A stretch of 63,931 nt of DNA, filler included, from Octopus bimaculoides (lineage: Eukaryota): NCBI RefSeq assembly GCF_001194135.2. It is 7 parts of 6 records of this genome, joined end to end, with 100 filler letters (N's around TTAATTAATTAA, not from the genome) between each part and the next. Parts side by side here need not be neighbours in the genome. Positions count along the whole stretch, not along the records: positions 25,784 to 31,261 come from NC_068985.1; 6 more parts are not named here. One strand, 5' to 3'. Positions 27,202 to 31,010 of this stretch are shown here, piece after piece. Each line of letters opens with the position of its first letter. Position 1 is the first letter of the stretch. Made by a program: the position numbers and the translations under genes. The notes beneath the pieces are model-generated. The model saw only the letters and a program-made list of their open reading frames with translations. It made no database searches and was not told the origin of the DNA.

Positions 27202-27337
27202 ATTAATCAAAATGTCAAGCCCATATCTGAATGCAGTGACTTGCACTGGGAGTATGCTATCAAATAGCTGCTGTCTCATTTATGGTCTCCAAGTCTATAC
27301 TCAATATCACAGCTTTGCAGCAACATTGCTTTGCCAG
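27202..27337 (+). CDS. Class C GPCR (7tm_3; GABA-B/GPR156-like), internal exon encoding ICL1-TM2-ECL1
   Basis: Acceptor cacatag| and donor CAG|gtaaac. Open frame (R)LIKMSSPYLNAVTCTGSMLSNSCCLIYGLQVYTQYHSFAATLLCQ. IKMSSPxLN is the hallmark ICL1/TM2 motif of GABA-B/GPR156 receptors. Ends in phase 0, matching the next exon. Confidence 0.9.
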
Positions 27338-28399
27338 GTAAACTATTGTTGCTGTTATTATCAAAACTCTTATTGAGCTTTCATTGACCTACCTATTTCT
27401 GAATCTGCCTGTCTGTGTGTCTGTCTGTCTGTGTATCTGTCAGCCTGTGTGTCTGTCTGTCTGTCTGTGTCTGTCTGTATGCCTGTCTGTCTGCGTGCCT
27501 GCCTGTCTTTGTGCTTGTGTGTGTGTGTTTGTGTGTGTGTCTGTGTGTGTGTGTGTGTGTGTGTCTGTCTGTCTGTGTCTGTCTCTCTGACTCTGTTTGT
27601 CTGTCTTTCTCTCTCTCTCTCTCTCTCCCTCTCTCCCTCTCTCTCTCAATCGCTCTCTTCCTATTTCTCATTCATGCACATATACCTTCATATCATGAAA
27701 GCATGTGTCAATTAATGGTTTAATAAAAAATTATGATTATGGCTGAGAGATAGCAATTTACTCAAAGTAGCTACCCTCAGCTTCTACCATGGCCTCAAGG
27801 GTCAGCTCCCGAAACCTTGCACATCCTTTCCACATATTTCCCCAGGAAGATCCTCGAATACCTTCTTGATCTTGGTCACTGGCTCACCTTTGGTGTCGCA
27901 AGCAGAGCAGTTGCTGTCTTTGTCAACCACACTTAGTAATCCATGGGATTACAATCAGGAAAATTAGGAGGCCAGTAATTGTGGTTAGTGAAATTGTTGA
28001 AATTCAAGGAAGCTGCGACGTGTTTTCCAAGGAGGAGCAAATAAAGCGAGCAGACGACATACTTTATCATGTGACCAAATAGAACGGCAGACGACGCATT
28101 GTATTATGTGACCAAATAGAACGTGCAGATGACGTTTCACATGAAAACTGATAATGGCTTGAATGCGTGAAAAACATGCTTATGTGTCTAGAGAAATGGA
28201 GAATGCAAATGTTAAATTGAAATTTTCTTGAAATTTTTTTTTTTTAATCATTTTAAAAACAGTGAAATTAGGAAAGTGAAAAAATATTTGATCAATATTT
28301 GATCGAGTTTAGTTTACGTTGACGGAGATAGTATTAACACACACACACACACACACACACACACACACACACACAATCACGCACACACACTCTTTTAAT

Positions 28400-28766
28400 C
28401 TTTTACTTTGTCATTTGACCGCGGCCATGCTGGAACACCACCTTGAAGGGTTTTAATCAAAGAAGTTGACCCCACGACTTATTTTGTTTTAAAGCTTAGT
28501 ACTTATTCTATCGGTGTCTTTTGCCGAACCGCTAAGTTACAGGGTCATAAACACACCAACACCGGTTGTCAAGCGGTGATGGTAGGGACAAACACAAAGA
28601 CAAATGCATAGATATATACATATATATTTACGATGGGCTTTGTTCAGTTTCCGTCTACCAAATCCACTTACAAGGCATTGGTCGGTCTAAGGGTATAGTA
28701 GAAGACACTTACCCAAGCTGCCACGTAGTGGGACTGAACTCGGAACCATGTGGTTAGGAAGCGCAC
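28400..28766 (-). mobile_element. CORE-type tRNA SINE in a GPCR intron
   Basis: Family match; runs into the gap at 28767. Confidence 0.85.
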
Positions 28767-29564
28767 NNNNNNNNNNNNNNNNNNNNNNNNNNNNNNNNNN
28801 NNNNNNNNNNNNNNNNNNNNNNNNNNNNNNNNNNNNNNNNNNNNNNNNNNNNNNNNNNNNNNNNNNNNNNNNNNNNNNNNNNNNNNNNNNNNNNNNNNNN
28901 NNNNNNNNNNNNNNNNNNNNNNNNNNNNNNNNNNNNNNNNNNNNNNNNNNNNNNNNNNNNNNNNNNNNNNNNNNNNNNNNNNNNNNNNNNNNNNNNNNNN
29001 NNNNNNNNNNNNNNNNNNNNNNNNNNNNNNNNNNNNNNNNNNNNNNNNNNNNNNNNNNNNNNNNNNNNNNNNNNNNNNNNNNNNNNNNNNNNNNNNNNNN
29101 NNNNNNNNNNNNNNNNNNNNNNNNNNNNNNNNNNNNNNNNNNNNNNNNNNNNNNNNNGTGAAAATTGAAGAATTGGAAATGGGGGATAAAGATTTTAAAA
29201 TCCGGCTCTTTTTGCAGAATCAGACTCTCTGTACTCGAAAATGGGGGATTTTGTAACAGAAAAAAAAAAAAACGAAAGGGGATGCGGTTCACATTCTTTA
29301 CGTCCGTCTAGTTTCACTGGTTTTGGTCGAATTAAATTCATATTTATTTATTCATTTATTTGGAGCCCTTTGCACATGCATTTTACCTATGTCGTCTTTT
29401 CTTAAAACTCCTAACAGTTCTCTTGCAGTAAGTATGTTCTATAGTCACATTCGCAGTAGGTTTTGAGCTCGAGAGCCAACACTTTAATAACAAAATAATT
29501 TCCATTCACCTGTTCTCTCATTCGAGACAGTCTTTTCCTCATTTAACTCTGCCTTCCATTTCAG

Positions 29565-29672
29565 ATACGTGCTTGGTTTCTGGTTTGTTCTTTTACTCTG
29601 ATTTTGGTGCCAATTTTGGCGAAATGTTGGCGTGTCAACCAAATCTTCAAGAAAGCAGCTTTCAAGAGGATA
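29565..29672 (+). CDS. Class C GPCR (GABA-B/GPR156-like), internal exon encoding TM3-ICL2
   Basis: Acceptor ccttccatttcag| and donor ATA|gtaagt. 108 nt, phase 0-0: IRAWFLVCSFTLILVPILAKCWRVNQIFKKAAFKRI, matching the class C TM3 motif KxWRVxxIF. Confidence 0.9.
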
Positions 29673-30887
29673 GTAAGTAATAACACACACACATATTACA
29701 TTTTCATCCAATGGCTTTCTGGGTGTCAGCGCAGTGGGTAATTGTGGTTTAGTTTCAGCTCAGCATTGACTTGAGTAGTACAGTGTTTAAGCACATTCCA
29801 GCTGTGATTATGCCTTTTTCCAGGCATAGGCTATCCGTTATTCTAAGTTTTTTTATCCTTTCAAATCCTTAAGTAACAATTTTGAACTTGATTTAATTGT
29901 TATTTCTGGCAGATCAAACAATAATAATAATAAAGATTTCGCCTACGATATTAACTGAATTATTTTAATGGCTATTATCTTGTCAGACTATAAATTAATT
30001 TTGAACTAAAATTTAAATAAATTTATTGCTGGTTATCTTGAGAAATAAAAATGGCTAATACATATATAGGTTTAAAGCAAGTGAAACATTAATGTATGAC
30101 AAAAGATACAGATATAAAGAATACACATGATGGAATCCCCTTAAAGTAATCAATGTACTGTAATAAACCTTTCAGTTTTAGAAATTCTTTGTGAGGAGAT
30201 CCTGTAGATTCAATTTTGGCCTAATGCGAGAAATGTGAGGATCACAGGATGAGAAGTATTTAATGGATGGTGAACTGAAAAAACAAATGTTGTCTGGAAG
30301 ATGATCTAATTGAGATCTAGTATTGAGTCAAAGGAATTTTAGCAGAGATGTATTTGGAGATTCAGTTGATATCTTAACTGAAACGTAAATTGTAGGTCTG
30401 TCATCACAAAGATAATCATAAAGATAACTCATGTTTTGAAACCACCAAACAATGACATTTCCACCTTGCGCCAAGAAATACTATATCGTATAGATGTGTT
30501 GATAGCATTAATGTCACAGATGGAGAAATAACGAAGGATTATTCAGTTGAGTTATTAAATAGAAACGCTCCAAAGAAATACCACCAACTAGAAGTAGATT
30601 TGACTTTTTCTTTCGTAATATTGGCCGCCTTAAGTAATAATTTTGGATTTTTTCCATAGCTAATGGCTACTAAACCAACTAATGAAACAACAAATTTTTA
30701 AAACTTAACCGCACTACTACCACTACCACCACCACCACTACTACTACTACTACTACTACTACTACTACTACTACTACTACTACTACTACTAATAATAATA
30801 ATAATAATAATAATAATAATAATAATAATAATAATAATTGAAGTTTCAGTTAAAGTTTGATTTAATTTTGCACATATGATTTGACAG

Positions 30888-31010
30888 GTTATTAAAGATT
30901 TACGGTTGTTTATTTTCATTGGAGCAAATCTATCTGTAGACATGATTTTCATGACATTCTGGCAAGCTCTGGATCCATTAAAGCATCGATTTATTCCAAT
31001 AATTACCAAA
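30888..31010 (+). CDS. Class C GPCR (GABA-B/GPR156-like), internal exon encoding TM4 and start of ECL2
   Basis: Acceptor gatttgacag| and donor AAA|gtaagt. 123 nt, phase 0-0: VIKDLRLFIFIGANLSVDMIFMTFWQALDPLKHRFIPIITK, matching IKDxxL...D...WxxxDP. Confidence 0.9.

Follow-up and report, generated by a model that had tools for sequence, protein, structure and literature searches.

What kind of receptor is encoded by the three short coding exons that lie between positions 27202 and 31010 of the stretch of Octopus bimaculoides DNA analysed here? This stretch, called the window in the following, is 63,931 nucleotides long, filler included, and a preliminary description had recognized in it part of a G-protein-coupled receptor (GPCR) of class C from a cephalopod, as the source of the DNA bears out, and had likened this receptor to GPR156. 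Vertebrate GPR156 is an orphan receptor with constitutive Gi coupling and takes part in the EMX2-dependent reversal of hair-cell orientation. Our comparisons indicate that the three exons are very probably internal coding exons of the O. bimaculoides orthologue of GPR156, corresponding to exons 2-4 by homology to a scallop gene. This assignment rests on a full-length orthologue from Octopus sinensis, because the peptide encoded in the window is by itself nearer to GABBR2, the second subunit of the GABA-B receptor, and a tree computed from the window peptide alone is weak.

Three exons of a GABA-B-related receptor

The exons have the coordinates, canonical splice sites and matching phases that had been described for them, and they join into the same 122-aa peptide. 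The features of the surrounding piece are as follows (TM, transmembrane helix; ICL and ECL, intracellular and extracellular loop):

25784..27201, plus strand: 3' portion of an intron that lies upstream of the first of the window exons, without a TM1 or start-codon exon
27202..27337, plus strand: coding exon E1, 136 nt, acceptor ...cacatag and donor gtaaac, phase 2 in and phase 0 out; (R)LIKMSSPYLN...TLLCQ, comprising ICL1, TM2, ECL1 and Cys3.29 at the start of TM3
27338..29564, plus strand: intron 1, GT...AG ends, holding the gap 28767-29157 and microsatellites
29565..29672, plus strand: coding exon E2, 108 nt, acceptor ...catttcag and donor gtaagt, phase 0 at both ends; IRAWFLVCSFTLILVPILAKCWRVNQIFKKAAFKRI, comprising TM3 with Lys3.50 (K of AKCWR) and ICL2
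29673..30887, plus strand: intron 2, with (ACT)26(TAA)16 microsatellites ending ~50 nt before the acceptor
30888..31010, plus strand: coding exon E3, 123 nt, acceptor ...tttgacag and donor gtaagt, phase 0 at both ends; VIKDLRLFIFIGANLSVDMIFMTFWQALDPLKHRFIPIITK, comprising TM4 with the end of ICL2 before it and the start of ECL2 after it, identity to O. sinensis 100%
31011..31261, plus strand: start of intron 3, donor gtaagt; the contig ends at 31261 and a 7.5-kb assembly gap follows

The joined product, LIKMSSPYLNAVTCTGS...LLCQ/IRAW...AFKRI/VIKDLRL...IITK (slashes mark the exon junctions), spans ICL1, TM2, ECL1, TM3, ICL2, TM4 and the start of ECL2; the first base of E1 completes an arginine codon. 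Annotated octopus proteins match it with 98-100% identity. The gene had been called invisible to the track of open reading frames, which is loosely true, although each exon is listed there as a fragment of 45-54 aa; it had also been called hidden, which it is not, being already modelled in RefSeq as XP_014787590.2, a protein of 131 aa that is 100% identical to the 122-aa peptide and has the same two exon junctions.

A run of 391 N (28767-29157) lies wholly within intron 1. The exon ends on both sides of this junction are in phase 0, and LLCQ/IRAW reads on without a break in O. sinensis and Argonauta hians, with no indel there relative to human GABBR2; therefore, the gap is not expected to contain coding sequence, and its length is irrelevant. 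Independent support for the exon boundaries comes from the scallop Pecten maximus, whose orthologue could be reconstructed exactly in 7 exons of 131/136/108/123/348/159/873 nt, the second to fourth of which equal the window exons in length (136/108/123) and phase. Vertebrate GPR156 shares these intron positions as well as the 136-nt and 159-nt exons: the gene of the fish Lampris has exons of 136/111/126 nt at the equivalent positions, the 136-nt exon being its exon 3, and the same 159-nt exon for the coiled coil.

Intron positions were also considered as a means of telling GPR156 from GABBR2, and were rejected. Sea-urchin GABBR2, with exon boundaries taken from tblastn alignments, has exons of ~133/108/123 nt whose boundaries and phases agree with those in the window. 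The boundaries are therefore ancestral to GABBR2 and GPR156; they validate the exons and cannot discriminate between the families.

Judged by its sequence, the peptide is TM2-TM4 of a class C GPCR of the GABA-B/GPR156 branch, as had been proposed. It matches the Pfam family 7tm_3 (PF00003) over profile positions 38-143 of 251 with 61.9 bits, compared with a gathering cutoff of 33.5 (E 9.5e-17). A sequence search of the PDB returned human GABBR2 at the top (80 bits, E 1.4e-21), followed by 9jqx_B, a GABA-B subunit 2 (67 bits), human GPR156 (61 bits) and GABBR1 (40 bits), and all 19 matches at E<1 are GABBR2, GPR156 or GABBR1, as opposed to mGlu, CaSR or GPR158.

The full-length orthologue groups with GPR156

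The 90%-identity cluster of XP_014787590.2 also holds isoform X3 of O. sinensis LOC115212258, a protein of 562 aa with a complete seven-transmembrane domain (7TM) from residue ~9 and a long tail, but without a Venus-flytrap domain. The window peptide is 98% identical to this orthologue, whose isoforms have 8 residues ahead of TM1. RefSeq names its isoform X2, along with the orthologues from Pecten, Mizuhopecten and Patella, 'probable G-protein coupled receptor 156'. The predicted isoforms, which may be genuine alternative transcripts or artefacts of prediction, differ in two further respects: X2 skips the 41-aa exon that corresponds to window 30888-31010 (TM4), which would result in a 6-TM product, and X3, as well as a predicted model from Pinctada, is without a coiled-coil cassette of 52-53 aa after TM7.

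An exhaustive HMMER search of representatives with the O. sinensis 7TM yielded 1600 matches, the best of which were proteins of 560-720 aa with the 7TM beginning within ~60 residues of the N-terminus. For phylogenetic analysis, 141 near-complete 7TM domains were combined with human GABBR1, the sequence of which agrees with PDB 6w2x_A over 338 residues except the first, and neighbour-joining (NJ) trees were computed from Kimura distances (200 replicates) and from Scoredist/BLOSUM62 distances (100 replicates). The O. sinensis 7TM falls into a clade of 8 vertebrate GPR156 and 17 flytrap-less invertebrate proteins, the octopus protein included, with bootstrap values of 74% (Kimura) and 95% (Scoredist); the clade excludes GABBR1 and GABBR2, and the 8 vertebrate representatives group together at 100%. 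Among its members are 'probable GPR156' of Sorex and Lampris, the molluscs Pinctada, Lottia, Haliotis and Pecten, the brachiopod Lingula, the nemertean Tubulanus, the starfish Acanthaster and the amphioxus Branchiostoma. All 25 are without a flytrap domain and have at most 62 extra residues ahead of TM1. One GABBR1-adjacent sequence in the tree, from a sturgeon assembly, is flagged 'UNVERIFIED_CONTAM' at NCBI and may be a contaminant in a public genome.

The tail, which was left out of the tree, points to the same grouping. At a threshold of E<1e-3, the matches of a hidden Markov model (HMM) built only from the post-TM7 tails of the 8 vertebrate GPR156 are confined to 15 of the 17 clade members from invertebrates and three N-terminally truncated fragments. 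With this HMM, O. sinensis X2 scores E 8e-8 and another cephalopod E 9e-8. No flytrap-bearing protein was found below E 0.009; GABBR2 of Pogona, a vertebrate, scored E 1.3, and octopus GABBR2 gave no match to the tail HMM. The O. sinensis orthologue thus shares with vertebrate GPR156 the short N-terminus, the absence of a flytrap domain, the long low-complexity tail and the coiled-coil motif EN..LK..L.EK...I..LQ..V..AK.KL after TM7. The corresponding coiled-coil region of O. bimaculoides falls in an assembly gap, and the tail evidence is that of O. sinensis. Most invertebrate clade members end in D-T-[FLYI]-V and vertebrate GPR156 in P-T-[LF]-V, while GABBR2 proteins differ; octopods end in DIMV, an end that is also encoded downstream in the O. 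bimaculoides locus (see below), and another cephalopod ends in DTIV. Further tail motifs, SI..DL..A..LS..LR.SIS.DL, LAGSI..SY.L.D..DTYSYVSSY and NDKLYP, occur in invertebrate members and not in vertebrates.

Within the 7TM, the octopus and vertebrate proteins have only ~28-30% identity, and they differ at two positions of interest. The window encodes both Cys3.29 (TLLCQ, E1) and Lys3.50 (AKCWR, E2). Lys3.50 is universal in the alignment and thus kept in vertebrate GPR156, whereas Cys3.29 is replaced by I/L/V/F in 8 of 8 vertebrate proteins and kept in every invertebrate member. At position 6.35, vertebrate GPR156 has S/A/T/L, whereas O. sinensis has Glu (TM6 lies outside the window); this position is non-acidic in 14 of the 17 invertebrate clade members, compared with D/E in 75 of 117 other proteins. 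For vertebrate GPR156, also called GABABL, the structures 8IEB, 8YK0 and 8YJP are available. In human GPR156, as seen by cryo-electron microscopy, I120 at 3.29 precludes a TM3-ECL2 disulfide, S257 at 6.35 leaves K3.50 without an ionic-lock partner, and a residue of ICL2 is located at the contact of the C-terminal tail of the receptor with the G protein (PMC11621567).

How firmly, then, can the window exons be assigned to GPR156? A number of observations weigh against the assignment. The loss of the flytrap domain and the features of the tail are known from O. sinensis and not from the window itself, the octopus C-terminus is DIMV and not T-x-V, and the two hallmarks of human GPR156, the loss of Cys3.29 and a non-acidic 6.35, are absent in octopus. 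In pairwise comparison the window peptide is closer to GABBR2 than to GPR156 by the PDB scores given above, and it scores higher with a profile of flytrap-bearing proteins (113 bits) than with one of vertebrate GPR156 (88 bits), the top score of the three profiles being that of the invertebrate flytrap-less group (138 bits). A tree of the window peptide alone (121 columns) recovers the clade approximately, with an exact bootstrap of 11%, and the 7TM trees are distance-based NJ trees only, the remainder of which is poorly resolved. Three other explanations have to be weighed in the light of these observations.

Alternative explanations

The explanation that fares best among them is that the invertebrate family lost its flytrap domain independently and is not orthologous to GPR156, so that its grouping in the NJ trees would be a long-branch artefact. 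Vertebrate GPR156 indeed sits on a long divergent branch and scores below GABBR2 against the octopus sequence, the trees are of the NJ type only, and octopus shares neither hallmark of the human receptor. The tail, however, was outside the tree, yet a profile made from vertebrate tails alone matches the invertebrate clade specifically. Moreover, a C-terminus of the form D/P-T-x-V is common to both sides, amphioxus and echinoderm members bridge to the vertebrates, and the predominance of non-acidic residues at 6.35 sets the invertebrate members apart from the other proteins. An independent loss is therefore unlikely, if still the most serious competitor of an orthologous relationship.

A second explanation follows the RefSeq product name of XP_014787590.2, 'gamma-aminobutyric acid type B receptor subunit 2 [Octopus bimaculoides]', and takes the exons for a piece of the GABBR2 orthologue of octopus, its GABA-B2 subunit. 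Besides the name, it has in its favour that human GABBR2 is the best PDB match and that the flytrap-bearing profile outscores that of vertebrate GPR156; LIKMSSPY.N and IIKD are common to the window peptide and GABBR2, which also has Cys3.29, Lys3.50 and an acidic 6.35, as well as, in sea urchin, the same intron positions and phases. However, octopus has its own flytrap-bearing GABBR2 in a different gene. In O. sinensis this is the GABBR2-like LOC115214515, with products of 932-1386 aa, which is located on another chromosome-scale contig and groups in the NJ tree with the GABBR2 of protostomes, brachiopod included. GABBR2 proteins form a separate clade, carry an ANF_receptor (flytrap) domain of ~450 aa and have neither the GPR156-type tail motif nor a T-x-V end, whereas the window gene's orthologue lacks a flytrap, groups with GPR156, possesses the GPR156-type tail and is named GPR156 in O. 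sinensis. This reading is thus largely refuted, and we regard it as very improbable. The name of XP_014787590.2 is misleading, and its annotation should be corrected to that of the counterpart of LOC115212258, 'probable GPR156'.

The preference for GPR156 over GABBR1 and GABBR2 had originally been argued from short motifs. While the preference itself agrees with the tree of the full-length orthologue, with its tail and with its lack of a flytrap, the argument is weak: 'PIL' before K3.50 is found in octopus and vertebrate GPR156, but the other invertebrate members aligned have PMF, PLV, PVA, SMF and others instead. Because these lack 'PIL', and many clade members have 'KR.VI[KR]D', such motifs are suggestive only.

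Flytrap-less receptors of this kind have been described before under another name. The 'GABABR2-like' proteins of the ascidians Styela clava and Ciona robusta lack the flytrap and have been reported to cluster first with GPR156, and expression in Styela was reported around the pigment cells of the ocellus, not in mechanosensory cells (PMC9138782). The ascidian proteins, which were outside our NJ tree, probably belong to the same orthogroup as the octopus gene.

A truncated gene or a truncated assembly?

The piece that contains the exons (25784-31261) derives from O. bimaculoides chromosome CM046605.1, where it occupies positions 8573-14050 of a locus, L001, that we delimited at CM046605.1:98,343,666-98,367,503. 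It is a contig island with runs of N on either side, L001 6272-8572 (2301 N) and 14051-21569 (7519 N), which are CM046605.1:98,349,937-98,352,237 and 98,357,716-98,365,234 on the chromosome. The RefSeq model owes its short length to the position of the contig between these two gaps: it begins at the Met of KMSSP, and its last donor is read through to a stop (…ITKVSDIYICLSLDL*).

Searches by tblastn that used N-terminal sequences from O. sinensis and from 12 other clade members gave no credible TM1 exon in the piece or in the 10 kb upstream, which are partly N. A fragment of a cytochrome P450 gene lies on the minus strand at L001 1-4874, ~5 kb upstream of the window exons, and the TM1 exon must sit in the gap-rich stretch between this fragment and the window exons, or beyond. 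Downstream, the equivalent of O. sinensis residues 161-462 was not found in the readable sequence of the ~24-kb locus, but the final 100 codons of the last exon, DIMV included, are present at L001 21572-21871, 2 nt past the gap, with 95% identity to O. sinensis. The 7.5-kb downstream gap takes in the exons for TM5-7 and the coiled coil, together with most of the last exon, and the TM1 exon lies upstream of the contig. The sizes to be expected are about 350 nt for TM5-7, ~156 nt for the coiled-coil exon and ~840 nt for the last exon. Since the missing parts coincide with runs of N, the truncation is an assembly artefact and not gene decay. A truncated pseudogene without TM1 and TM5-7 might be suggested for O. 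bimaculoides by the 131-aa fragment in RefSeq and by the fact that 24 kb yielded no more than three exons of the 7TM and the final 100 codons. This reading is hardly credible, as the missing parts match the two gaps exactly, the last-exon match resumes directly after the second, all visible exons are open with intact splice sites and encode protein 95-100% identical to O. sinensis, and TM5-7 are intact in Argonauta hians and in a transcript of another cephalopod.

Possible function and evolution

What can be said about the physiological role of the octopus receptor? The gene would belong to a flytrap-less GABA-B-related clade that extends over molluscs, a brachiopod, a nemertean, echinoderms, amphioxus and vertebrates, and its product, like those of the other members, would be expected to start a few residues before TM1, to form a coiled coil after TM7 and to carry a long tail, which in the clade usually ends in D-T-x-V. 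By analogy to human GPR156, it may be a dimeric, Gi/o-coupled receptor that needs no extracellular orthosteric ligand. Its basal activity may be more restrained than that of vertebrate GPR156, because the cysteine of the TM3-ECL2 disulfide and an acidic 6.35, two features of 'lockable' class C receptors, have been kept. The coiled coil and the PDZ-ligand-like end suggest that localisation is regulated, which would agree with mouse hair cells, where GPR156 is localised in a planar-polarised manner (PMC8129141).

A role in orienting the hair cells of the statocyst or of the epidermal lines, as raised in the preliminary description, would by analogy be a reasonable hypothesis. Our literature search found no paper linking GPR156 with octopus or citing the accession numbers, and no described function of the invertebrate clade members. 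As the gene had already been modelled and its O. sinensis orthologue already named GPR156, the novelty of the find is low. What it does illustrate is that flytrap-less GPR156-type receptors with the ancestral Cys3.29 occur across several bilaterian phyla. The octopus gene is a candidate with which to ask whether cell-polarity signalling through Gi is older than the hair cells of vertebrates, and the retained Cys3.29 and Glu6.35 offer natural variants for testing the source of the constitutive activity of human GPR156. A more far-reaching scenario would have GPR156 not as an innovation of vertebrates but as an ancient bilaterian receptor, the ancestral form of which, seen in octopus, kept the disulfide and the 3.50-6.35 lock, with the orientation of cephalopod hair cells, in statocysts or epidermal lines, through Gi as a case of deep homology. 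Taken as a whole, this scenario is a long shot, but if true, the extreme constitutive activity of vertebrate GPR156 would be a later derivation.

Repeats in and around the introns

The intron upstream of E1 contains an insertion of ~260 bp (26592-26855) with an A/T-rich tail at its end, flanked by a 14-bp direct duplication, TGTTATGATGCTTA, at 26578-26591 and 26856-26869. It looks like a short interspersed nuclear element with its target-site duplication. Scans with ARAGORN and Rfam detected no tRNA or other RNA family in this insertion, nor any tRNA gene or Rfam match in the piece as a whole. What looks like a second interspersed repeat (28400-28766) abuts the left edge of the gap in intron 1 and may explain why the assembly breaks there. 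Simple repeats are dense in the introns, with (TCTG)n/(TG)n/(TC)n at 27404-27658, (AC)27 at 28337-28390 and (ACT)26(TAA)16 at 30713-30838, and a 37-bp tandem repeat is present in 2.6 copies at 28038-28133.

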